Notes under the pieces: generated by a model
The model's database searches: none
Seen by the model: the letters and a program-made list of their open reading frames with translations, nothing else
Told to the model about the DNA's origin: nothing
Source: Trichosphaerium sp. ATCC 40318
Taxonomy: Eukaryota > Protista > Tubulinea
Assembly (NCBI GenBank): GCA_038496445.1
Contig: JALMLS010000447.1
Coordinates: 1 to 64,000 of the forward strand
DNA length: 64,000 nt
Direction of reading: 5' to 3'
Translations under genes and position numbers: made by a program
Shown: one piece after another, positions 27,247-48,700 of the stretch
Layout: each line of letters opens with the position of its first letter
Numbering within the stretch: position 1 is the stretch's first letter

Positions 27247-27753
<507 letters not shown>

Positions 27754-29548: not shown

Positions 29549-29742
29549 AAAAAAAGTGCATTTACATGCCACACAGTCCAAAACTATAAACTTCTCTTGC
29601 TATTCTTAATAAAGTCATTGAGTACACACGAGGTCTTCTTCTGGTATTTTCAGGTCAGCAAGTTACGCTAGCGCTATCAAGTTATTTTAAGTTTGTTCTC
29701 CAAATTTCCCATTTCTTAATCAAGCGGTAAAAGTAAATATTT

Positions 29743-32700
29743 ATGAGGCTGGTGCTCTTCCTTATCGGTACAACTTTACAACGTCCATACGTTTGGTAAA
29801 TATTAACAAAAAAAGTAGTGTTGTCTTTAGCCGGTTCGCTCGCGAGAACTCTTCAATGGGTACCTACAATAGACCAAGGCGACGTTGGAACGGTACTGTA
29901 GTTGTTTAGTAAACCCAAAAATATTCAAAAACATCCAAGGCAGCAAATTGGCTTGTTGGAGGCAATGCAGCACTAACGGGACCGGAAATAAACGATGATG
30001 TAGCGTTTGTTGGTACTGATCCAGTTGTCATTATGTTTCCAAACGCAGGTACGTCATTGCGCTAGTTGGTAGTACCCACATTTGGTATTTAAAATGCGCA
30101 CGTGACTAACTATCAAAAAAGAAAAAAATTACCAAAACCAAATCCCAAATTTATTCTTTTTGAGATTGTAGTCAACCGTGCGCATGCATGCTTAAGAACT
30201 TTTGTTTTGTTACATCGTTTTTCCGATCTAACTGTAAAATAGGACCTGTCCCATTTAATAGCCTAGATCTAATCTTTTCTGGTAAGTTTGCAAGTCTTAA
30301 ATGCGTGGCTGCTGCTCACTTGTATAACTTTCTTTTTAAAGCGAGATATCATAGTTGGAATTCAATGGATATTGCAGCAGGCGCTGACGTGACGTTTAAT
30401 TTTACAGATAGCCTTGCTGGTGGGGTGGAGACAAAGTATGGTCATTTATTATAATGCCAATTATTTTTTTGTATCTTATGAGAGTGACGACCTTCTAGCA
30501 TAACTACCGACACTGCTGGATCTCTTGCATTCTATTATGGCACGGGTGCGAACTATGGGCTGCGAACTCTAAGGCAAGTATTTTTTTTTGTGTTTTACGG
30601 CGTTTAAAAGCAGTTGAATCCTTTTTTTTTTTTTTTTTGATATGTCTTCATTTGTGGTCTGATCGTAAAAGTAGCATGCCACCTTCATGGACAAATCCTA
30701 TCAGTATCCATACTCAGGGTTCAAATCTGAATTGGGTTACTGTTCCTTTCTCGAACACTTTGACCGTAGATGCGGGTTCCGGTACAATTTCCATTTGGGT
30801 GCAAACGCCACAGACACAAATTAAGTACGCGTAATATTTGAAACTTTACGCCAATTTTTTCTTTATTGGTTGTTTACTTTTTCAAAAGCATGGATTATAT
30901 ATCGTATCGAAGCGATTTAACGCCGAGTACTGAAGTACTGTTCGGCACTCTTGAGGATGAGCCTTTTAATTCAGATTACATCGTCAATATCGGTTCTATC
31001 ACGCAAGCAACACGTAGTGTCTCACATGTTGGAACCACTCTTACTAATGGAATTAATATAAACCTATCGATAATTGTGTCTGGTGTTGTTACAGTGGAGC
31101 AACGTTAGCATTTTACCCCTTTTTCGGATATGTGGTTTTGGGCTAACTCTTTTTTTTTTAATGTCTAGGGGAGCTCAGTTTTAGCCGTGCTGCTGATGTG
31201 ACATTAAATGATGTATCAATTGCTGCTAACAGTCTTGTTCGAGTGACGGTACGTTTGGGGTGGTAGTATACACTGTCTTGTCACAAATTGATTTAAAAAA
31301 ACCCCGTATGGTGTTTTCTCATTTGTTTGTTACTAGAACAATGACAACCTGGCATCCGGTACCTCTTTCACACTGTTGGGCACAGTTAGTGGATCCGGAC
31401 TATTCGTTTTTCAAAATCAAAATATAACCTTTCCGGCTGGCTCTGTGGTTTCTATTCCAGGGATAACATGTCTTGCTACTTCCTTTCCAAATAAGCCATC
31501 ATTCGTGAGGTTCGCTGGAACAGTAGCCAATAGACCGTTTTTATTGTTAAGTCGTACGACATTCTAAACTTTATGCTTTGTCCAAAGATTTGTTTGCACT
31601 CACTGGTTTAATTTGGTTTTTAGTTGCACCAGCAACTATGACTGTAATCATAGATACCACCACTGAAATGAGCGAACTTCAACTTGCTGCTATTGGAGCA
31701 GTCATTTTCCGAGGTCCAGAACACGTGAGTATTCCACAGTTTAACAGCGCTTGCAATCCCAAGAGTAAAACCTGATAACCCGAATGTTAGATCTTTTTCA
31801 GCAACATCACTTTGTTTGGAACGGGAACTAGATCACAGATCGCCAGTGATGGTCGTATCCACTTTGCTGAAAGCTTGGATGGTACTTTTACTACAGAAGC
31901 GGGCGGTATAATATTCTATGATAAAGTACGTTAACGTGTTTTTAAATCGCCTAGCCACCACTTTCCACCACCTCTTTTTATTTGTTTTGACTAAAAAAAT
32001 AAATTTTAGCCGCCTACAGGTGTCACAATAACAGGCGCCGGAAGTATTGCTATTGACAGTGGCGTCATGGACTGGGGAGCGAATTCAATCGCCACTACGG
32101 TAGCCCATATTGCCAACGGGGGAGACTTGGTGTATAACTCACAGGCAGATATCTCACAGAACGAGGTGAGACTGTTAAGCAGCGATGTGACAGGGGCGGA
32201 CTCTCTTCAATTCGTGCGTTTGTTTTGTACGATGATGTCTCTCATTTATTCTTTTTCGAGTATAGGCCAAGATCGTCGGTGCTGCTACAGCTTCTCAAAC
32301 TGTGTCAATAAGGAGCCTACAAAATGCAGAGGTAACGTTACTATCAGTTGAGTCAGGGATCCTATCTATATCACGTGCGCTTTTACTCCTTTGAAAATCC
32401 AAAAAAGAAAGTTTTGTCTTTTAATTTTTGTACAATTAGAATCGTCTGTCTCAGTCTCCAATCAACTTGTATGGGGCGATGAGGGAACCTTGGATATTGA
32501 AATGGGATCTGTCGTAACCGTTAGAGATATTGTCATCAACACTGGAAGTATAGACAAAATGGCGGTGCTTCAAGGTATGAATGAGCGATTAGTATCAAAT
32601 CGATTAAATTCTGATTTTGGCTTTTAGGTGACGGCCTTTTCAACGTCACAGGTAATGTTCAAATTAGCAATGGTACATTGGTTATTAGGCAATCTCAAGC

Positions 32701-35700
32701 CAGGTTTGACGGAACCATTACTATATCTACGGGTGGAATGTTGGTCGTCGAGACGGTGGGCAACATCGAATCCGTTCAAATTTCTGGTATGTCTCATCTA
32801 CTTTTTGAACCTTCAAACCAATCAATGTCTTGTTAACATTATTAGGTAACGGCGTTTTACGCCTAACTGGTGTACGCGTTTTTTTGAATACAAAATCAGA
32901 TAAGTGACTCATTAAATACATCTAGACCGGTCAGTCTGTAGGAGATGTGATAATGTCAGATATCGGATCTCTCTTAGAAGTTGTGGCAAACAGTACCAAG
33001 AGAACGACTGTATCCCAGCAGATACGGTCACTTGATTGGCAAAGAGGTATGATACTGTACATGAGACATACGTTAATGTATTGTAAAGGACAATTAAACA
33101 TGGGTGGCGGCGGACTTGAGGCACAAGGCGTCACGTTATCAAGAGACGGCGAAAAAGTTTTGGCTAACGGGTGCTTGACGCTCAGTGGAACTATTACGTT
33201 CGAAGGTGACGGAACAACCATCAATGGTAACCAAAAAACTCTCCCAAAACCACGCTTAATTGTTGATTTAGGTATATCTCCAAGCACTCTTGTTACTGGT
33301 GTACGATTCTCTTTTTTTTCTTTGTTTCTTCTTTTTTCTTCAAAAACGTGTTCATTAATCGGATTGGACTAGTCGATGGATTTGAACTCTGGCAGTTACA
33401 GGTTTAATGTGGACGAACTTATCACAAGGGTTTGATATATTTTTGTTTTTTTTTACCTCAACACGTGTTAATGGATTCTTAACGATAGAATTTGACTCAA
33501 ATAGTGGACGGTGCTGAGCTTGTTGTATCCGGCACACTCACACAAGAAGGCAATTTTAGGGCTTCAGGTCTTACTGCCCTTGTGATTGCAGACATGATTG
33601 ATAACAAAGGAGTACTAGAGGTCCGCACATTCGTGACTTTTTGTATGACGTGAACCCATACCAACTCTTACTTTTTAGTATTCCGGTTTATTCGAAGGTG
33701 ACCTTCAAAACAGCGGTAGACTCAATGTCGGACTTGGAGATGCCTCTCCTCCTCCAGGAAGGGTTCTTGACATCTCTGGAGAATTCACACAGGTAAGTGA
33801 TTTACTACGTTAGATCCTTGTATTGACCAATTTGCAAGAGTTCTACTGGTTCAATCTTGTTCAAAATAGGAGGACAATTGCGTGCCGATCATGACGCAAT
33901 TCAAGCCATGAGTATAGTCCTTGATGGTGATTTGATACTAGAGACTACAGTACAAGAGATTAACTCTACAGCTCAGTTATCAGTGATGAATTCCAATACA
34001 AGTACGTTTTAAATGCCTCTAATGAACCGCGCCTTGCACGTGCAGAGATTGTTGGCTAAATATCGTGCGTCATAGCTATCGTTGGAAGTTTTTCGAACCA
34101 AACAAAGAGTCCGCTGTTAGTAAACGCCACAATTGGCATACGAGGTGATTCTGTAATCCTCTTTCTCGAAGGCAAGTTTTTTTTTTGATTCTGCATAACA
34201 AAATCCTGGATTTGGTTTTTGTGCTTGCGTGTTGCTCATGTACCCACTTCAGGTTGCCAAGCGCTCGTATCATGTGGAAACTGTATTATCAACGCTGACT
34301 GTCAATGGTGTCAAATCGGAGTAGCTCGATGTTTGTCATCAAGTACGTCAATATTTCATCTTAATAATAATAATCAAAACACTTGATTTGACTTTATACA
34401 ATAGGCGTACAATGTGATTCTAGTGTCGGTATAGGCGGCACGTGTCCAAGTGAATCCACCGACAGTTCTATCAGTACGTTAAATGGTGTTCTTGTTCTTG
34501 TTCTTGTTGTTAAAGAGATGTGTCTAGACGTGGTTGCTATCATTGTACCTATCATTATATGCTTGATCATCATCATACTCGTTGCTGCTTTTCTCATTCT
34601 CAAGTTCAGAAGAGAACCAGAAGGTTCTATACTACAGGTAAGTTATACAACCAAATATCTCATCTTGTTGCTGACAAGTACTTTTTTTAGAGGAAACCAG
34701 GTCCTCCAAACTTCGAACCTATCGCTTTTGGCCAAGCACTAATGATCACTCGTATTGCAAAGGAAGATTCCGGAAGGGCTCAGAGTTTGGACGAGCTCAG
34801 GAGCCTTCTCGTTGAAGATGAGGAGTTCCGACTTGCTAGCGCCATTGCTGATATAACCAAAGCTACAGAACAGGATGGCATGGCTCAAGCCTTTGTATAC
34901 ATCTTTGAGAGTCACGAGGGATCACTCAACCTCATACGTAACTTTATTTCAGCAGAGGTTGCTGCTGTAGAATTGGAAACGACGCTTTTCCGCTCGAACA
35001 GTATGGCATCCAAGATGCTCAAATTCTACTCCAAATTAGTAGGACTACAGTATCTATGGAATACACTCAGTAGCGAGATTTTCTTGCTGATGGAACGCAC
35101 GAAGGGTACGTCATCCTGACTTTTCATGCACTTTGTTCTAAACTTTGATTCAAGGTGACACTGCTGGCAACGACCACATGGAGATGTCGGGAGTTGCTCA
35201 ACCTGCCCCATTAAAGGACTCGATGGCGTTCACTTTTGAACTCGATCCTGTACTGAAGGCAGATGACGAGGATGTCCGTATCAATAAGTACACACTACTC
35301 CTCACAGCGCAGAAAGTGCTCACAAAGATTTTACGATCACTCGATAGCATCCCAATGTACGTCCATCACAAGCTTTTTCTTTTCCCTGTCACGTGTTTAA
35401 TAGCGCTAATATGATTTGTAAAGAGAGTTCCGTGTGATTTGCACGCACTTGGGTAGGGAGGTGCACAAGAGGTTTCCAAAGTCAAAGTACACAGCGATTG
35501 GCGGGTTTATCTTCTTAAGGTTCTTCAACCCAGCAATCAACTTGCCTGAGTCCTACGGACTTGCAGCGGAACCTCCTTCCAGAGAGGCTCGTCGTGTGTT
35601 TGTACTTATAACAAAGACACTACAAAGTCTATCGAACGGTATCAAACTGGGTGGAAAGGAGCCTTACATGGCCGTACTGAATGATTTTATCGATGAAAAT

Positions 35701-35964
35701 CAAGATGAGATTAACAATTTCTTTGATGGTATTGCCACAATGCCTAAGAATAGAACAGAGGATGACGACTTTCTGCCTTCTGTTATACCTGATTGGATAC
35801 AACAGATTGCACTTGCAAACGTGTACAAGATGATATACATGAACAGGACGAAGCTGAACCAAGTCTTGAAGGAAGAAGATGAAGACACACTCGCCACCAA
35901 ATTGGAACAGTTGATTGCCAGAGTAGGTGATCCACTTGCATACGAGAAAAAAGACTCAGCGTAG
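29743..35964 (+). CDS. Single-pass receptor RasGAP, paralog 1: signal peptide, beta-helical adhesin-like ectodomain, PSI, TM, RasGAP
   Basis: MRLVLFLIAGSLA signal. PSI-like CQALVSCGNCIINADCQWCQIGVARC. TM VVAIIVPIIICLIIIILVAAFLIL. GAP motifs LFRSNSMASK and GGFIFLRFFNPAI. More than 20 exons; some internal exon boundaries are uncertain. Confidence 0.85.
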
Positions 35965-39131: not shown

Positions 39132-40888
39132 ATGCTACGAGGTTTGCAAACCAAGTCGTTGGTTATTGCAAACAAAACATTAAACGTAAGTCCCCAAATA
39201 AAACCGCTTTCTCTCGTTCACGTATTACTACAAGTGCTAAAATAACGCTTTTTCCATGTTTAAAAGCAGTTTGTGTACCAGTTTAAAAGAAAATTCTAAC
39301 TGACGAATTAGCAATTGCCCACTGCAAAAAAATCAACCAAGGTTACTGCTCGCAGTCCTCACTCAATCAGAATTGATAATGGGCAATGTACGCCCGGCGT
39401 TTTTACACTCATGTTTATACGATAAGCACCATCACTGACGGCCATTATATAGCGCAAGAAACAACAAGCCTAACTCCTAGGCTCGCTAAACTGAAAGAAT
39501 ACTCCAAACCACAAGGCTTTGGTCAGTACACTGATTACAATGCCGCTTTGGAACAACTAAACAGAACGGATTATTATTATTCAGAACAAGACGAATTACT
39601 AGCGGCTCATAACAAGGTCATACACGCAAGCAAAAGCTCTCAGGACGCCTTTGAGAACTTTCGTCAAATGTATGATAACGGCGTGTCACCTGACGTTTCA
39701 ACGTTTATTGGTCTACTCAAACACTGCGCCAACAGCGCAGAGGCAGAGCATGTACTAGAGGAAATGGCAAACACGTACTGCGTTGACCCAGATGAGGTAG
39801 TGTACGAGTACATGATTGGCGTGTACAGGAGAGAGGGCAACACCGTCAAGATAATGCGTATGTTCGATGCAATCAACGAAAACGGCTTAGTCCCAACGAT
39901 GCGATCCTATGAGATGAAAATAGAAGCCCTGTGTATGGGTGGATTGCCAAAAGAGGGCCATGCCGTGCTAGAAGAGATGAGACGTCACGACTTTGTGCCT
40001 TCTGCGATAGCTTACAAGTTTATTGTTTTGAGCTACGCGACAAGAAAGCTTGTTGAACCGGCCGTTAGAGTCATGTCAGAGATGAAGGCTTTGCATCAGA
40101 GCGGGGATATGGTAGATTTGTATCACCACTTGATAGTACTCTCCTTCAATAACGCGCAGTATAGCTACGTCAAGATTTTGTATAAAGGTACGTCGTCGCA
40201 GTCGACATTGGATTCCCATTCGCTCCAGCACTTGGGGTTTTTTTTTTGTTTTTGATTATTTGCGGTCAATCTCACTCGACTACTAGATATGCGTAATGCT
40301 GGTTATGTACCAATGATTCATACTTACAACACTTTATTGGGGACTGTTTTAAAGACCAAGTCAGAGGGTGATCTGACTGCTGTTATGGATGATATGAAGA
40401 GAACCAAAGTAAGGCCTAACAAACGCAGTTTCAATCTGCTACTGGCTTGCCACAGTACTTTGAACCTACATGAAAAAATGCCTGAGATTGCAACGGCTAT
40501 GGTGAATAGCGGCTACTCCCCTGACGCCAACACGTACAGCCAGTTCTTCAATATACTCAAAAAGCCATCAGATATGTTCAACATGTACGATACAATGAAG
40601 GAAAATGACGTCATACCTCAAGATGATATATACAAAACGTTAATTGATACTTGTCGCGAATTAAACCTTCAACAAAAGGCATTTGGGTTCTACTCGGATA
40701 TGATCAAGAACAATGTCAAGGGCAACATTGACACGTACAATACGCTCTTGTTGTTTTGCTCTGGTCTACCACAAGAGCGTGGCAAGGCCGAAGCGCATAA
40801 TGTCCTAATGGATATGGGCCGGGACAATATTAAGCCGGATAGCATCACAGAGTGGGCTATTAATCACTTGTTCCGCCAGCGTGATTGA
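39132..40888 (+). CDS. Pentatricopeptide-repeat (PPR) protein, likely mitochondrial
   Basis: 35-aa repeats (GVSPDVSTFIGLL, PDEVVYEYMI, PMIHTYNTLL, PDANTYSQFF). Presequence-like start MLRGLQTKSL. Confidence 0.88.
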
Positions 40889-42715: not shown

Positions 42716-45700
42716 CTACTTTTTGTCAGAGCTGATTTCGAGTGGCTCGCCCACCCTATCGATGATTGAGTTGATCTGTGCGCGGAGAGTCTATGCGTTC
42801 AAGGAGTTAGGTAGTCATTAGGCGGGGTATAACAAGGCAATCATAAAACGTGTCGTACGCTATCCAATGACTCTGATATTTTATTTCTGTTTGTGTAAAC
42901 GTGTTTGTACACGTGCGCCAAAGCGACAGCCTATCAAAATTTTTTAGGAATCAAATATGCGGTAGAAAACCAGCAAGCGAGCAACGGGTGGCCGGTTGAG
43001 GTACCTCAACATCTGGTGGAATGCTGGTTGGGAGTACATCTTCATCCTCGCTGTGGCCACTTGGCATACTGGCAATGTCGTCGAACCAGTTGAATATCTC
43101 TTCCTGGTTGTCATCAATGAACTCGTTGAGCTTAGCCATGTATGGCTCTTTGCCACCAAGCTCAATGCCGTTTGCTAGACTTTGTAGCGTCTTTGTAATC
43201 AATACAAACACACGGCGAGCCTCTTTAGATGGTGCACTTCGTGAGAGTCCGTACGATTCAGGCAAGTTGATTGCTGGATTTATCAACCTCAAGAAGATAA
43301 ACCCGCCGATTGCTGTGTTCTTGGAGTCTGGAAATTTTGCAGTCATTTCACGTTGTAGATGCGCACACAGTATTCTAAACTCTCTAAAGTACCGAATTTT
43401 AGTAACCATGAAAACAAACAAAGACAAGTGTTGAAGTAGGAGGAGGGTGCCGTACATTGGTACTTTGTTTAGAGAACGTGTAATGTGTGTCAATATCTTC
43501 TGTGCTGTAAGCAAGAGCTGATATTTGTTGATTCTTATGTCTTGCCAGTCTTCTTTCAAATGTGGATCGAGTTCAAAAGTGAACCCATCACCGCCGCTGT
43601 TGTGAGATACGTCACCAGCGCCTTGTGCTTCAAAAACAGTCAGTTCATATGTTAACAAGGCGGTAAGAGTTACGCCTGTAGCAACACACCTTTGAGTGTC
43701 TCCATGACGATATGAATGTCGTCGCTGAGCGTATTCCATAAATATTGGAGACCGATCAGTTTAGAGTAGAATTTCAGCATTTTAGAGGCCATGCTGTTAG
43801 ACCTGAAAAGCGTAGAGTTCGCGGTCGCTGAACTGATCTAAAAGATACGGTCAGGCAATGTCTAACATGCAAAGTGGCAAAAGGGCATTGAGAGCGTACC
43901 TCTCTGCTTATAAAGTGCTTGATGATATCAATTGAGGACCTCTCAGATTCAGTAATGTATACCAGTGCTCGTGCAACATTGTCTTGGTCTGTCGACTTTG
44001 TAACATCAGCAACGGCCTCAGCCAGCTTCAAGTCGTCTGCCAATATTAGATCACGAAGCTCTGAAAGGGATGCAATACGGCTTTGGTCTTTTCTTGCAAC
44101 CTAAATTACCACAAAATATGGTTAACTCAAAATAAGAAGAAGAAGATGTTTGTACCCTGTGATTGGCGGTGACGAGGTCCCCAAACGCAATAGGTGTGAA
44201 ATCCGGTTGCGGAGGTTTGTTTTTGAGCAGAGCTGCGTTGCTAGTACCGCCACCACCCTTTCCTCTCAAGACGAAGTACACGACGAGAATGGCGATCAAC
44301 ACCACAATCACAATGACGATAGGTACGACAATTGCAGGCACATTCGAGCCACCAGCGTCTAGCTCACATTGGTCCACCTCTATTGATGTTGTTTGAGTTG
44401 ACGTGTATAGTAAATACTAAAAGGGAAAAAGGAAAAGGGGGTTGGCTCTTTTTGTGTACCTCTAAAGTCTGTGCAGTTTGAATTGATGGTCTCCAGGCAA
44501 CGATCTTCTGACGGCCAATCCGCTGCTGCACACCAGCCACATGCTGCGCTTACACAAGGACTACATTCTCCAAGAGCCGCACAACTCCTGGCAATACGTG
44601 CTCCTGTACCATAAGTGATGCGAATGTCATCTCCTCCAATGACACTGTTGTTCAAAGTTAGCAAACAAAAGTCTACGCTGGTCGTACTCGGCGAATCGTC
44701 CAGCGTTGTTACTGGCAAGATCAGACGACACCAACGCCAACGTTAATGCTGTAATATTGGAGTCCAATCGCAAAATTAAAGTGCCTCCAAGGAAGGCTGC
44801 TCCTGTAACAGCCACAGAGTCTGACACTACATCACGGAAACTTGGATTAGCAATAAGTTGGCAGTACCACTCTCCTTTTTTTGTTACTCACCTTCACCTC
44901 CGGCGTCTATGATGAGCGTTCCGGCCTGGGAGTACGTGCCTTCTATCCTGATAGTCTGCGGTGGCGGTTGTCCTTCAGCACCGAGATCGATAATCCCGTT
45001 TGTCGATAGAGATATTTCGCCGCCTATAGTGCCTGTGCCCCTGAGGATGCCGTTTATGTCAAAACTATCGGTCTGTAGTGCATCACCACCATTTATGATC
45101 ATTGTTGACATTTCCATCTGTACAAAAAAACGTGTTAAACACTTTGAGCTTCAGATAATCGAGTAAAAAGAAGACGTGTTGTTATCATCTCACCTGTGTC
45201 ACTGCGCCAAGTGTTACGTCTGCTCCATTTTCAATGGTTACATTGTTGTTGAACACCACGCCAATAGCGTAGTTGTGAGTCACGCCGCTCATAAATGTGA
45301 GAGGTAAACCAATAATAAGGTTGCTGTGGACAACGTGTTAAACTTATTGAAAGAGCCTACATCATACAAAAAGGGGAACGACATTACCTTGCTCCTATGC
45401 CGTTGCTGATACTGAAGGAAGTTCCACTTCCATACGTTATGGATGATACACTGACGTCACCCTGGATTGTCTTGCCTACCGCTGTCTCCTCAATGGTTAG
45501 TGATGTGATGGCCAGAATTGTATCAGCGCTAGCAGATAGTGTGCCGCCTGCCCACAACACCGTTGGTAGAGTGGCGGTAGCTTGCCGTTTTTTGGTGCTC
45601 GCTACAACTTCAATGGCTCCAGAGTCAATACGTGTATTGCCAGTCAACATCTCAAGTCGATATTAACACAACAAGTCTTTTGTTTCAGGTGCATAAAACG

Positions 45701-48700
45701 TACTGCGTTGGTACTGAGTACAAGCTTGCCATTGTCGGATATGGTAGTGTTACTGATAGTATGTTGGCCTCCAGTGAATTCAATCTCGCCAGATCCCATA
45801 GCTTGTATTGCTGACGGATCTTTATTTACAATAAGAGGTTAGTGGTGTTGGCGGCTATAAACCAAAAACAAAGAAAAAACCCAGATTAATAGTTTTTTTT
45901 GAGTTGTGGGTAATTTGACGCACCAACGCCGGTTATGGCTGCCATGTCAATCACGAGCCTTCCTGAGGTGACTATGATACGCTTAAAGTTCCAAGTGCCA
46001 TCGCCAGTGACTGTCCAAGTGTTGCCAGTCCCTATGTTGAATGTGAAGTCTTCGCTTGTTGTAAGCGTTGCCCCAGATGCAATCGCCAAACTGCCTAACC
46101 AGGATGAGAATAACCAATATAAACAAAGTACTTACCCCCTCCGTTGACCTGTGCTAATGTTGCAGATAATGTTCCGCCCCTGTAGTAGCGTTTGTTGTCA
46201 GTCACATATGCACGTGTTTTTAGAATATTTTTCACATTACCCTATTTCTGCACTACTGCCATCCTCGAACGTGGCTTGAGGGACAGTAATGGTTCCAGCA
46301 TTGACGACAATCTTATCGCCATCCGTATCCACTCCGGAGAAGATGAGATCCAAAGTCTGGTCGTTGAAGGTGACAGTGCCGCTCTGTAAGCTCAACGTAT
46401 TGTCAATGGTGCCTGTGAAAGTGACGGCTGCGCCATTTATAACGATGCCCAGCGTTGTGGCGATGTTGTTTAGACCGGTAAAAGTTCCTGTGCGTTGTAA
46501 AATGTGAGGAGAGGTTGATGAAACAAAATTGGCTAATAGGTGTGAAAGCGTACCACCACTCAAAAATACTTGGCCGTCGCCTGTCAAACTATCTTGTGCA
46601 ACCAATGGTCCAGGTATAACGATCTTACCTGCAACAACTGCTACAATCCGTGTGGCCGTTGCTATAGCACAAGGAGTAAGCGGTGAGTACTGGGTGACAA
46701 ACAAGAGCGCTTTCAACAAGACAGACATGATCATTAGCGCTAGTACTTACTTCTAATATCAACCTCGGCACTAGCTGCCACTGTCACAGTTACAGGATTA
46801 GTTGTGGACCAAGTATCAGTTACAAATTTGCCCTGTGCAAAGGTATAGGAGCCAGATGGGATGCTGGTTTGATCAATAGTAACAGTAGTTGTTGTTGAAA
46901 AGCTGCCCATACCGCCTAGATCAAATAGCATAAGCGAAAGATGGCCTTCTACTAATAGATAAAAGACAGAAGTTCTCGTACTGATTGCCAATTGTGTAAT
47001 TATGGCGCTATTGGTCATTACGTGAGAGTTCCTTACATCAAGGTTGCCGCTTTGTAGTTGGCCAGTGACGGTCGTATTTGAATTTATCAACGTTAAATCA
47101 CCTCCATCCACACTCTCAAATGTCGCCAATGGAGCCTTTTATTTGTTAGCTCGGTTAGACAACCCCTGAAGGGAAAAGATAAAGCAAGATAAGAAATTAT
47201 CAGAAACAAAAGAGAAATGGTCGTACATCGACAACGAGAGATCCTTGTGCCATGATTGTGGTTGCACCACATTCAAACCTGTCTAATTGAACTTGCAGGC
47301 GACCTTGATCAATATTACATGTCGTGACAGTCATGGTCATTGTGCTGCTTCCGGTTCGCATTATTTGTCCTCCCCCCTGTCTATTGACGGTTAAATCAGC
47401 TGCATCCCACGTTATCGGTTCGTTGGCAACGGTGTCAACTGTAAACAAAGCTTCGGTATTGCCTCCAACGAAGGAAAATAACGGGTTTTCGATTTGCGAT
47501 GCAGCATTCATCCTCATAGTCATTTGAGGACGTGCCAACTCTGCTGATGTCGACCCCAGCGTCAATTCCGATACCTAGAGAACAGAGTTGTCTATATTAA
47601 TATATATATATGTGTTACTGCACAAACCTGAGTTGTAATTGCTGGTGTGTTAAATCTAAACATGCCAGATTCGACAACAAACTTATACCTGGCATACGAT
47701 AAATATAACGAATGAGTGAGGTTGAGTGAGATTTACCTGAAAGTAGCTCTAATATTTCTCATGTTAATAAAGAATACAAGATGATGAAACAGCGCTGGAC
47801 GTACCTGAACAGGGCTCCACCGACAACTTGAGTATCGTCATAGGTAATTTCGTTTTGATTGCCTGCGACTGTTAAATCGAAAAGCCAAGTAACAAAAGTT
47901 TCAGCTGCATTATTATGTTAATCAGTTTGATATATAACAAATATCAAGGTAAGTATGCATACAGTGTCTTAGGACAGTGACCCCAGTACATGGGTTTTTA
48001 ATCAGCTACACAGTTTTATTAGCCATCAGCAAGTAAATAAAAAAAAACGGGTTCCCAACCATTTTGACATCTGATTGTAAGGTCATCGCTGACCACACGT
48101 GTGTTCTAATTATGCGATCAAAAAAAACCCCTCAACCAAAAGTAGCACGTACGAGTTGCGCATAGGATCGATAGATTCTGGTGCTAGAACAGTACAGTTA
48201 GGAATTTTGTCAACACTTTTTTGGAAATATTTTCAAATAGATCTATTGCGCACTGGCTTCTAAAACAATCGTGGGTAGTGGCGCAGCCGATGAAAACAGT
48301 ACGCTGTCTCCTTCACCAGGAACATACTGTGGTGGAATTGTTCCAGGGAGACTAAAACGTGTTGTAAGTAAATTATTTTGATACCAAATTTACTTGCTCA
48401 AAAACCTAAACACGTCGATTTGGTGATATCACGTGTTTGAATTTATTAATTTTTTGCTGTTGGGAAATAAAAAGTGTTGTACTAAGGTGTATTCGTTGTA
48501 GTTAGTACCTGCTTTCGCATAGCCACAATTCATGGTTAGTTGCGTCTCCGCTTTCAGGTGCTGGGTTTTTTAGTGCGCCCCAAAAGCATCCAAATCCTCC
48601 TGTCTGTGCGTTTGCAACAGTCACAACAAGCGCTAGGTGTCAGGTAGTTAGAGTTAAACACCGCATACCACTGGTTTAAAGAAATACCTAGTACAAGCGC

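Follow-up and report, generated by a model that had tools for sequence, protein, structure and literature searches.

Two RasGAP receptor genes of the amoeba Trichosphaerium with a candidate relative of the terminal module of bacterial beta-helical passengers

Results

The stretch of DNA analysed here (the window) comprises 64,000 nucleotides of contig JALMLS010000447.1 from Trichosphaerium sp. ATCC 40318 and is eukaryotic DNA with a GC content of about 0.41 and short GT..AG introns. Two paralogous genes point towards one another in it: the plus strand carries paralog 1 (about 29743-35961), the minus strand paralog 2 (about 48400-42865). Their predicted products have the layout of type I membrane receptors. 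From outside to inside, a long repeat ectodomain rich in Gly, Thr and Ser leads into a terminal module (about 75-130 residues), after which come a PSI-like knot, a single transmembrane (TM) helix and an NF1/p120-type RasGAP domain whose arginine finger is intact. The terminal module is the subject of this work. By profile comparison it is predicted to be specifically related to the module at the end of the beta-helical passengers of bacterial autotransporters and PEP-CTERM proteins, and we consider this account of receptor and module as a whole to be moderately well founded.

Bacterial relatives of the module were retrieved from a metagenome collection that was searched for the pattern V.G...LGGTL in GC-rich codons, the pattern being a rung of the second module exon of paralog 2. 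The search returned 120 loci, a set that is skewed to GC-rich codons and to the LGGTL form of the rung, and 31-32 of these loci constitute one bacterial family on which four of five seeds converged with the retrieval pattern masked. An iteration with the motif unmasked drifted into unrelated proteins and was discarded and redone with the pattern masked. The family is described by the pattern G.L.PG.SPG.L.I.G.YTQ...G.L.IEIGG....D.L.V.G.ATLGGTL...GF.P..G..F......G.F, its consensus reading G.L.G.G......N.G...PG.S.G.L...G.....AGG.L..EI.G...G...D.L.V.G.ATLGGTL......G.....G..F..........G.F. The open reading frames (ORFs) of its members fall into two groups, which either possess an autotransporter beta-barrel end (PF03797) together with PATR repeats and ESPR signal peptides or end in a PEP-CTERM anchor. 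An initial annotation of this DNA had stated from family knowledge that the motif is typical of autotransporter and PEP-CTERM passengers, and the context of the 31-32 metagenome relatives shows this to be correct. A module of about 150 amino acids is common to both kinds of protein and directly precedes the translocator or the anchor (for example at the metagenome loci L012:9421-9888 and L095:2664-3131).

For the comparison with the amoeba, a hidden Markov model (HMM) was built solely from the stretch of 75 residues that precedes the retrieval pattern and was run with filters off against 1,665 stop-free segments (81,106 amino acids) from all six frames of the window. This upstream half of the module has the form G.L.G.G..g.v.n.G.l.pG.s.pG.l.i.G.ytq..G.L.iei.G. 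The first rank was taken by the segment at 44887-45150 on the minus strand with an exon of paralog 2 (E = 1.4e-6, 25.1 bits) and the second by the segment at 33679-33810 on the plus strand with an exon of paralog 1 (E = 1.4e-4, 18.7 bits). Further ectodomain exons of paralog 1 followed on ranks three to five, among them 31791-31931 (third, E = 0.09) and 32615-32833 (fourth, E = 0.17). None of 2,000 shuffles attained the real score for either exon, the maxima being 12.7 and 9.6 bits, and the reversed exon sequences scored 2.5 and -0.6 bits with the same model. When the first seed was removed from the HMM, E-values of 1.3e-5 and 5.5e-4 remained. A model derived from six autotransporter-type members alone gave E = 1e-5 on paralog 2, whereas one derived from the PEP-CTERM-type members alone was weaker (E = 0.2-0.5), its best matches still being ectodomain exons. 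In a profile alignment with hhalign, the bacterial family and the first module exon of paralog 2 were paired with a probability of 64% (E = 6e-5).

The second module exon of paralog 2 reached 21.9 bits with the full HMM; this score is not counted because the exon contains the pattern with which the bacterial set was fetched. The central rung, D.L.V.G.ATLGGTL, appears as DSVAVTGAAFLGGTL in paralog 2, where the likeness is circular as the source of the retrieval pattern, and as DAIQAMSIVLDGDLIL in paralog 1, where it is not significant alone. The C-terminal motif pointed out in the initial annotation is nevertheless supported as more than a chance likeness, since the pattern-free HMM placed the two paralogs first and second of all segments, no shuffle equalled them and the bacterial profile can be mapped onto the beta-helix stalk of Ssp described below. 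The strings quoted in that annotation are all present in the sequence, those of paralog 2 in its two module exons, and the joint given for paralog 1 is confirmed by RNA.

Among solved structures, the one matched by the bacterial profile is the Serratia marcescens Ssp passenger (PDB 8E7F), at residues 471-614 (E = 2.7e-10). This region forms a right-handed beta-helix stalk with three strands and seven turns; a PATR motif spans residues 464-496, and the final three rungs of Ssp resemble an autochaperone domain beneath a beta-hairpin cap (PMC9977779). The profile thus overlaps the end of the PATR. By transitivity, the amoeba module would correspond to the rungs between PATR and cap. The ectodomain as a whole is predicted to be a right-handed beta-helix rod. 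In paralog 1, the ectodomain sequence recurs with a period of about 6.6 residues (peaks at 6-7, 13-14, 20 and 26-27; z 3-4), which fits coils of about 20 residues with three faces each, and similarity among the ectodomain exons exceeds what composition explains (z about 16 versus shuffles). In the ESM Atlas, two paralog 2 exons have language-model neighbours in the beta-solenoid passenger families PATR, Pertactin, AC_1, AIDA and rOmpB, all with scores below 0.9 and hence to be taken as a lead only; the best Pfam repeat scores, obtained with the paralog 1 exon at 32615-32833, are likewise sub-threshold (Fil_haemagg, E = 0.078; PATR, E = 0.22).

Receptor architecture

The splicing of paralog 1 was derived from spliced transcript contigs of three studies aligned to 29740-35739. 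Exons defined by RNA are located at 33488-33618, 33677-33790, 33837-34001, 34076-34171, 34253-34342, 34405-34473, 34528-34635, 34689-35104 and 35154-35356. The gene has 29 splice joints in total, and two of the 15 that were listed fall inside the terminal module. The joints around the module (33618|33677, 33790|33837 and 34001|34076) are of the GT..AG type. As spliced contigs are available from three studies, paralog 1 is expressed and the VLDISGEFTQ / SSTGSILFKIGG junction is real.

A putative start codon and the first part of a signal peptide (MRLVLFLI) were read from the sequence at 29743-29767 (plus strand, as for all features of paralog 1), followed by a GT donor; the transcript contigs begin near 29819-29826. 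The N-terminal exon with the motif AANW...P...DDVAF (29939-30046) lies within a spliced contig. N-terminal ectodomain exons follow at 30499-31553, and the mid-ectodomain exons at 31791-32785, which supplied ranks three and four with the bacterial HMM, contain weak additional PATR-like rung pairs. The exon preceding the module (NLTQIVDGAELVVSGTLTQEGN..., 33488-33618) is delimited by the RNA joints 33428|33488 and 33618|33677. Module exon 1 (SGLFEGDLQNSGRLNVGLGDASPPPGRVLDISGEFTQ, 33677-33790) is the one ranked second by the upstream HMM, and module exon 2 (SSTGSILFKIGGQLRADHDAIQAMSIVLDGDLILE..., 33837-34001) is bounded by RNA joints, its likeness to D.L.V.G.A.LGGTL being recognizable by eye only. 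The membrane-proximal ectodomain exon (34076-34171), again with RNA joints, is connected to the PSI exon through an RNA-supported GC..AG intron (34172-34252); the other listed joints are GT..AG. The PSI-like cysteine knot (CQALVSCGNCIINADCQWCQ) resides at 34253-34342, the TM helix (VVAIIVPIIICLIIIILVAAFLIL KFRRE), read from the sequence in an exon with RNA joints, at 34528-34635, and the cytoplasmic RasGAP domain is encoded by three exons at 34689-35961.

The exon borders of paralog 2 were read from the splice consensus in DNA alone, and all of its features are on the minus strand. An open segment at 48246-48389 holds the N-terminal exon (...PGTIPPQYVPGEGDSVLF...), and the largest ectodomain exon, 139 amino acids in length and an orphan at the sequence level, is located at 46243-46659. 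Module exon 1 (...NGILRGTGTIGGEISLSTNGIIDLGAEGQPPPQTIRIEGTYSQAGTLIIDAGGE, about 44892-45117) is the first-ranking match of the upstream HMM, and module exon 2 (SDSVAVTGAAFLGGTLILRLDS...AGRFAEY) occupies about 44677-44826 with an approximate 3' end. A PSI-like exon (SCAALGECSPCVSAACGWCAA...RCLE) with approximate boundaries at 44465-44644 and the exons for the TM helix and the RasGAP domain at 42865-44330 complete the gene. The positions of the introns in the terminal module are not the same in the two paralogs.

The cytoplasmic parts of the paralogs share 50-72% identity. Pfam RasGAP (PF00616) is found in both with 56-57 bits at a cut-off of 28.3 (E = 3.3e-15 for paralog 1 and 6e-15 for paralog 2), and the nearest solved structures are the neurofibromin GRD and p120GAP. 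The arginine finger of paralog 1, TLFRSNSMASK, aligns with TLFRGNSLASK of neurofibromin, and the FLR motif is also present (FLRF/FLRL). The PSI scores (E = 6.6e-4 for paralog 2 and 2.4e-3 for paralog 1) both fall short of the 23.1 bits required for gathering. Sema and Plexin_cytopl were without a Pfam match on any exon of either paralog. Two RNA-confirmed joints in the RasGAP region of paralog 1 (35104|35154 and 35356|35424) coincide with the ends of aligned blocks, and these are also the block ends in paralog 2 at about 43688 and 43450 on the minus strand; introns at sites common to both paralogs seem to be older than the duplication.

At the other end of the protein, the initial annotation had described a W...(N)W...P...D.V.F motif. 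A W..NW..P..D motif, in fuller form W.G...W....NW....P...D.v.f, is indeed a real feature of the bacterial relatives, where it directly follows the signal peptide; nine copies were counted in seven of 22 scanned ORFs. Its presence in the paralogs did not rise above chance: an HMM of the bacterial N-terminal motif yielded E = 2.4 on the exon from paralog 2 and E = 5 on the one from paralog 1, a gene in which the motif is divided across exons.

Variation between strains

Comparison of the window with spliced contigs of another strain revealed an uneven distribution of differences along paralog 1. In the N-terminal ectodomain exons at 30499-31553, nine nonsynonymous and no synonymous differences were found by codon computation, and three further differences in this region affect codon position 2 (frame by reading), such that all of them change amino acids. 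From 32534 to 35640, there are seven synonymous and no nonsynonymous differences. Eight of the differences are clustered within 130 bp (30923-31053). The pattern looks like diversifying selection on the distal rod or like a gene-conversion tract; the differing contigs could also stem from a close paralogue and not from an allele.

Exons of a ribosomal protein S27-like gene are present upstream of paralog 1 at 27308-27750 on the plus strand, in support of a native chromosomal setting. The interval that separates the receptor genes contains, at 39380-40885 on the plus strand, long open segments that resemble pentatricopeptide-repeat-like helical repeats by reading (VVYEYMIGVYRREGN, TYNTLLGTVLK).

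Discussion

Several observations weigh against homology of the terminal module and against a bacterial origin. A pattern from paralog 2 served to collect the bacterial set, and of the results only that of the upstream HMM is free of this bias. The short module exon of paralog 1 received no support from hhalign (probability 8%), the module exons of the two paralogs are not significantly alike by BLASTP, and the N-terminal motif did not reach significance in either of them. In the downstream half of the module (gf.p..G..F.i......G.F...y....l.v), which is split by introns in both paralogs, a downstream-only HMM had no significant exon-level match in the window. The ectodomains of the two paralogs are mutually unalignable, without a tblastx match at E < 0.01, and AF2 predictions for two single exons without alignment were unusable (pLDDT 36 and 41). 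Scans of every ectodomain exon of both paralogs with Pfam and NCBIfam returned nothing at threshold. These blank scans can be ascribed to Pfam itself, in which no model covers the terminal module as judged from nine scanned bacterial ORFs. Furthermore, the spliced models were searched one exon at a time, and power is lost by this procedure on a module that is divided by one or two introns.

Closer relatives of the ectodomain were sought in larger collections. The 139-residue exon of paralog 2 had no match at E<=1e-3 in an exhaustive phmmer search of 1.84 billion representative proteins, in which the exon itself was not found either; this also speaks against the bacterial reading. The same exon found nothing in the PDB with phmmer. 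A word-indexed search with two paralog 2 exons gave nothing, a blank of little weight in that only proteins of similar length were visible. When the two terminal exons were compared with 185,579 prokaryote genomes, that of paralog 2 had no match and that of paralog 1 (33837-34001) a single one of 33 bits. This locus, in a metagenome-assembled genome of the Vicinamibacterales (L001:3001-3102), agrees in 18 of 37 residues, was seeded by an exact 8-mer (DGDLILET), belongs to a Big_7 Ig domain and was rejected as a chance match. Because the 139-residue exon is without a relative at this threshold, the case for transfer rests on the abundance of the module in bacteria and not on a tree.

Taken as a whole, the initial proposal that a horizontally acquired adhesin fold was fused to a eukaryotic signalling module and then filled with introns is upheld in part. 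A passenger-like module, of a kind located within the solved beta-helix of Ssp, is fused to a PSI-like knot, a TM helix and a RasGAP domain and contains spliceosomal introns that are visible in RNA; horizontal acquisition itself is not shown, and the searches returned no close bacterial relative. A bacterial source is the simplest reading, since the module is abundant in bacteria and tied to export and anchoring systems that occur only there. We therefore think that the rod probably descends from a bacterial passenger that was captured long ago and later colonised by introns. A more far-reaching version, which we regard as tentative at best, holds that an amoebozoan ancestor captured a whole bacterial passenger, from its W..NW..P..D start to the terminal rungs, and remodelled it into the sensing rod of a receptor that inactivates Ras, with the module acting as folding nucleus in the eukaryotic secretory pathway and the tip diversifying for prey, mate or self recognition.

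Among the competing explanations, convergence deserves most attention. A right-handed three-sided beta-helix with coils of about 20 residues would drift towards G-x-hydrophobic-x rungs, such that the match would reflect a folding constraint and not ancestry. The modest scores of about 25 and 19 bits agree with this explanation, as do the composition, strongly biased to T, G, S, L, V and I, the sub-threshold Pfam repeat models, the language-model scores and the lack of a close homologue among the searches made. However, other exons that share this composition and periodicity fall 10-20 bits short of these scores, no shuffle exceeds 12.7 bits, and the match is situated at the last rungs in both paralogs just as in the bacterial proteins. 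We consequently judge convergence to be unlikely, albeit worth serious thought.

Somewhat less probable still is that the module is homologous but that the ectodomain belongs to an old amoebozoan or wider eukaryotic family inherited vertically, or that it arrived with a giant virus, without any lineage-specific transfer from bacteria. The N-termini of the Dictyostelium receptors GrlP, GrlQ and GrlR resemble chlamydial Pmp proteins, and amoebozoan receptors with bacterial-adhesin-like ectodomains are thus already known (PMC1885808); the present family could have arisen from this Pmp-like stock. The many introns, the native GC content of the gene and the deep divergence of the paralogs are in line with such a history, and many giant-virus genes have been reported in the Trichosphaerium amoeba (PMC10521059). 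The same genome paper describes many bacterial-like genes, identified by BLAST and alien-index screening only (PMC10521059). On the other hand, the chlamydial Pmp repeats (PF02415) match none of the ectodomain exons at E<=1, the searches made returned no eukaryotic relative, and in bacteria the module is bound to bacterial-only export and anchoring systems. The precedent in Dictyostelium also implies that a transfer, if there was one, could date far back, with vertical descent thereafter.

That the match is a chance or compositional artefact of the test design, for which it can be said that the family was fetched with the paralog 2 pattern, that its first seed is the member most like paralog 2 and that the search space was a single 64-kb window, is very improbable and largely refuted by an HMM that leaves out the pattern, by convergence from four of five seeds, by the E-values that persist without the first seed, by a paralog 1 that was not used in the design and by reversed and shuffled sequences that average at most 2.5 bits.

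On the reading of the module as a homologue of the bacterial passenger end, its retention amid ectodomains that can no longer be aligned points to a structural function, either as a cap or as a nucleus for folding. It may cap the beta-helix or nucleate its folding in the manner of the autochaperone-proximal rungs of bacteria, and for this reason may have been retained while the remaining ectodomain diverged. The rod would present a surface that binds an extracellular partner, and its N-terminal part may undergo diversifying selection. The PSI-like knot and the TM helix would link the rod to the membrane, and engagement or clustering of the receptor could position or switch the NF1-type RasGAP and in this way lower Ras-GTP locally, comparable to plexins.

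If the homology holds, a building block of the bacterial outer surface has become the ligand-binding part of a eukaryotic receptor that is wired directly to Ras, and a layout parallel to that of plexins was assembled from different parts. It would also mean that a short, unannotated terminal module common to autotransporters and PEP-CTERM proteins is conserved outside bacteria, which bears on how a beta-helix acquires its cap and its fold where the bacterial export machinery is absent. The receptors are a concrete candidate for the means by which a phagocytic amoeba couples surface recognition to local shut-off of Ras.

Comparison with known systems

The closest counterparts of the amoeba module are the passenger ends of type Va autotransporters (Ssp, 8E7F; pertactin/AIDA-type). 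Both have rungs of the form G.L.G.G.v.g.v...G.l.pG...pG.l.I.G.ytQ..G.L.I..GG....D.l.V.G.a.LGGTL, of which the closing D.l.V.G.a.LGGTL is a putative likeness in the amoeba, and in both a long repeat region runs C-terminally into the module, which in the autotransporters lies between PATR and the autochaperone-like cap. In contrast to these, the amoeba genes are intron-rich and lack an ESPR, a PATR repeat at threshold and a translocator, the beta-barrel model PF03797 matching none of their exons; instead, the C-terminal part consists of a PSI-like knot, TM helix and RasGAP. In PEP-CTERM proteins, which are anchored to the surface by the exosortase system, the module precedes the anchor by 65-100 residues, a distance similar to the spacing between module and PSI/TM in the amoeba proteins. 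The latter are devoid of a PEP-CTERM signal (PF07589/TIGR02595), for which the Pfam and NCBIfam scans of the exons gave no match, and the HMM of PEP-CTERM-type members was the weaker one.

With regard to the receptor as a whole, plexins (Sema-PSI-IPT-TM-GAP) have the same type I layout, with a membrane-adjacent PSI knot, for which the amoeba receptors have a PSI-like candidate, and, in the cytoplasm, a GTPase-activating domain that adopts the RasGAP fold. They differ in that Sema and IPT are missing from the amoeba receptors, whose GAP domain is of the NF1/p120 type (PF00616, finger FRSNS) and not Plexin_cytopl. Dictyostelium GrlP, GrlQ and GrlR, finally, likewise combine a bacterial-adhesin-like repeat region as ligand-binding part with a eukaryotic signalling unit; in these proteins the unit is a seven-transmembrane domain instead of TM helix and RasGAP, and the repeats are of the Pmp type, unlike those of the receptors described here.

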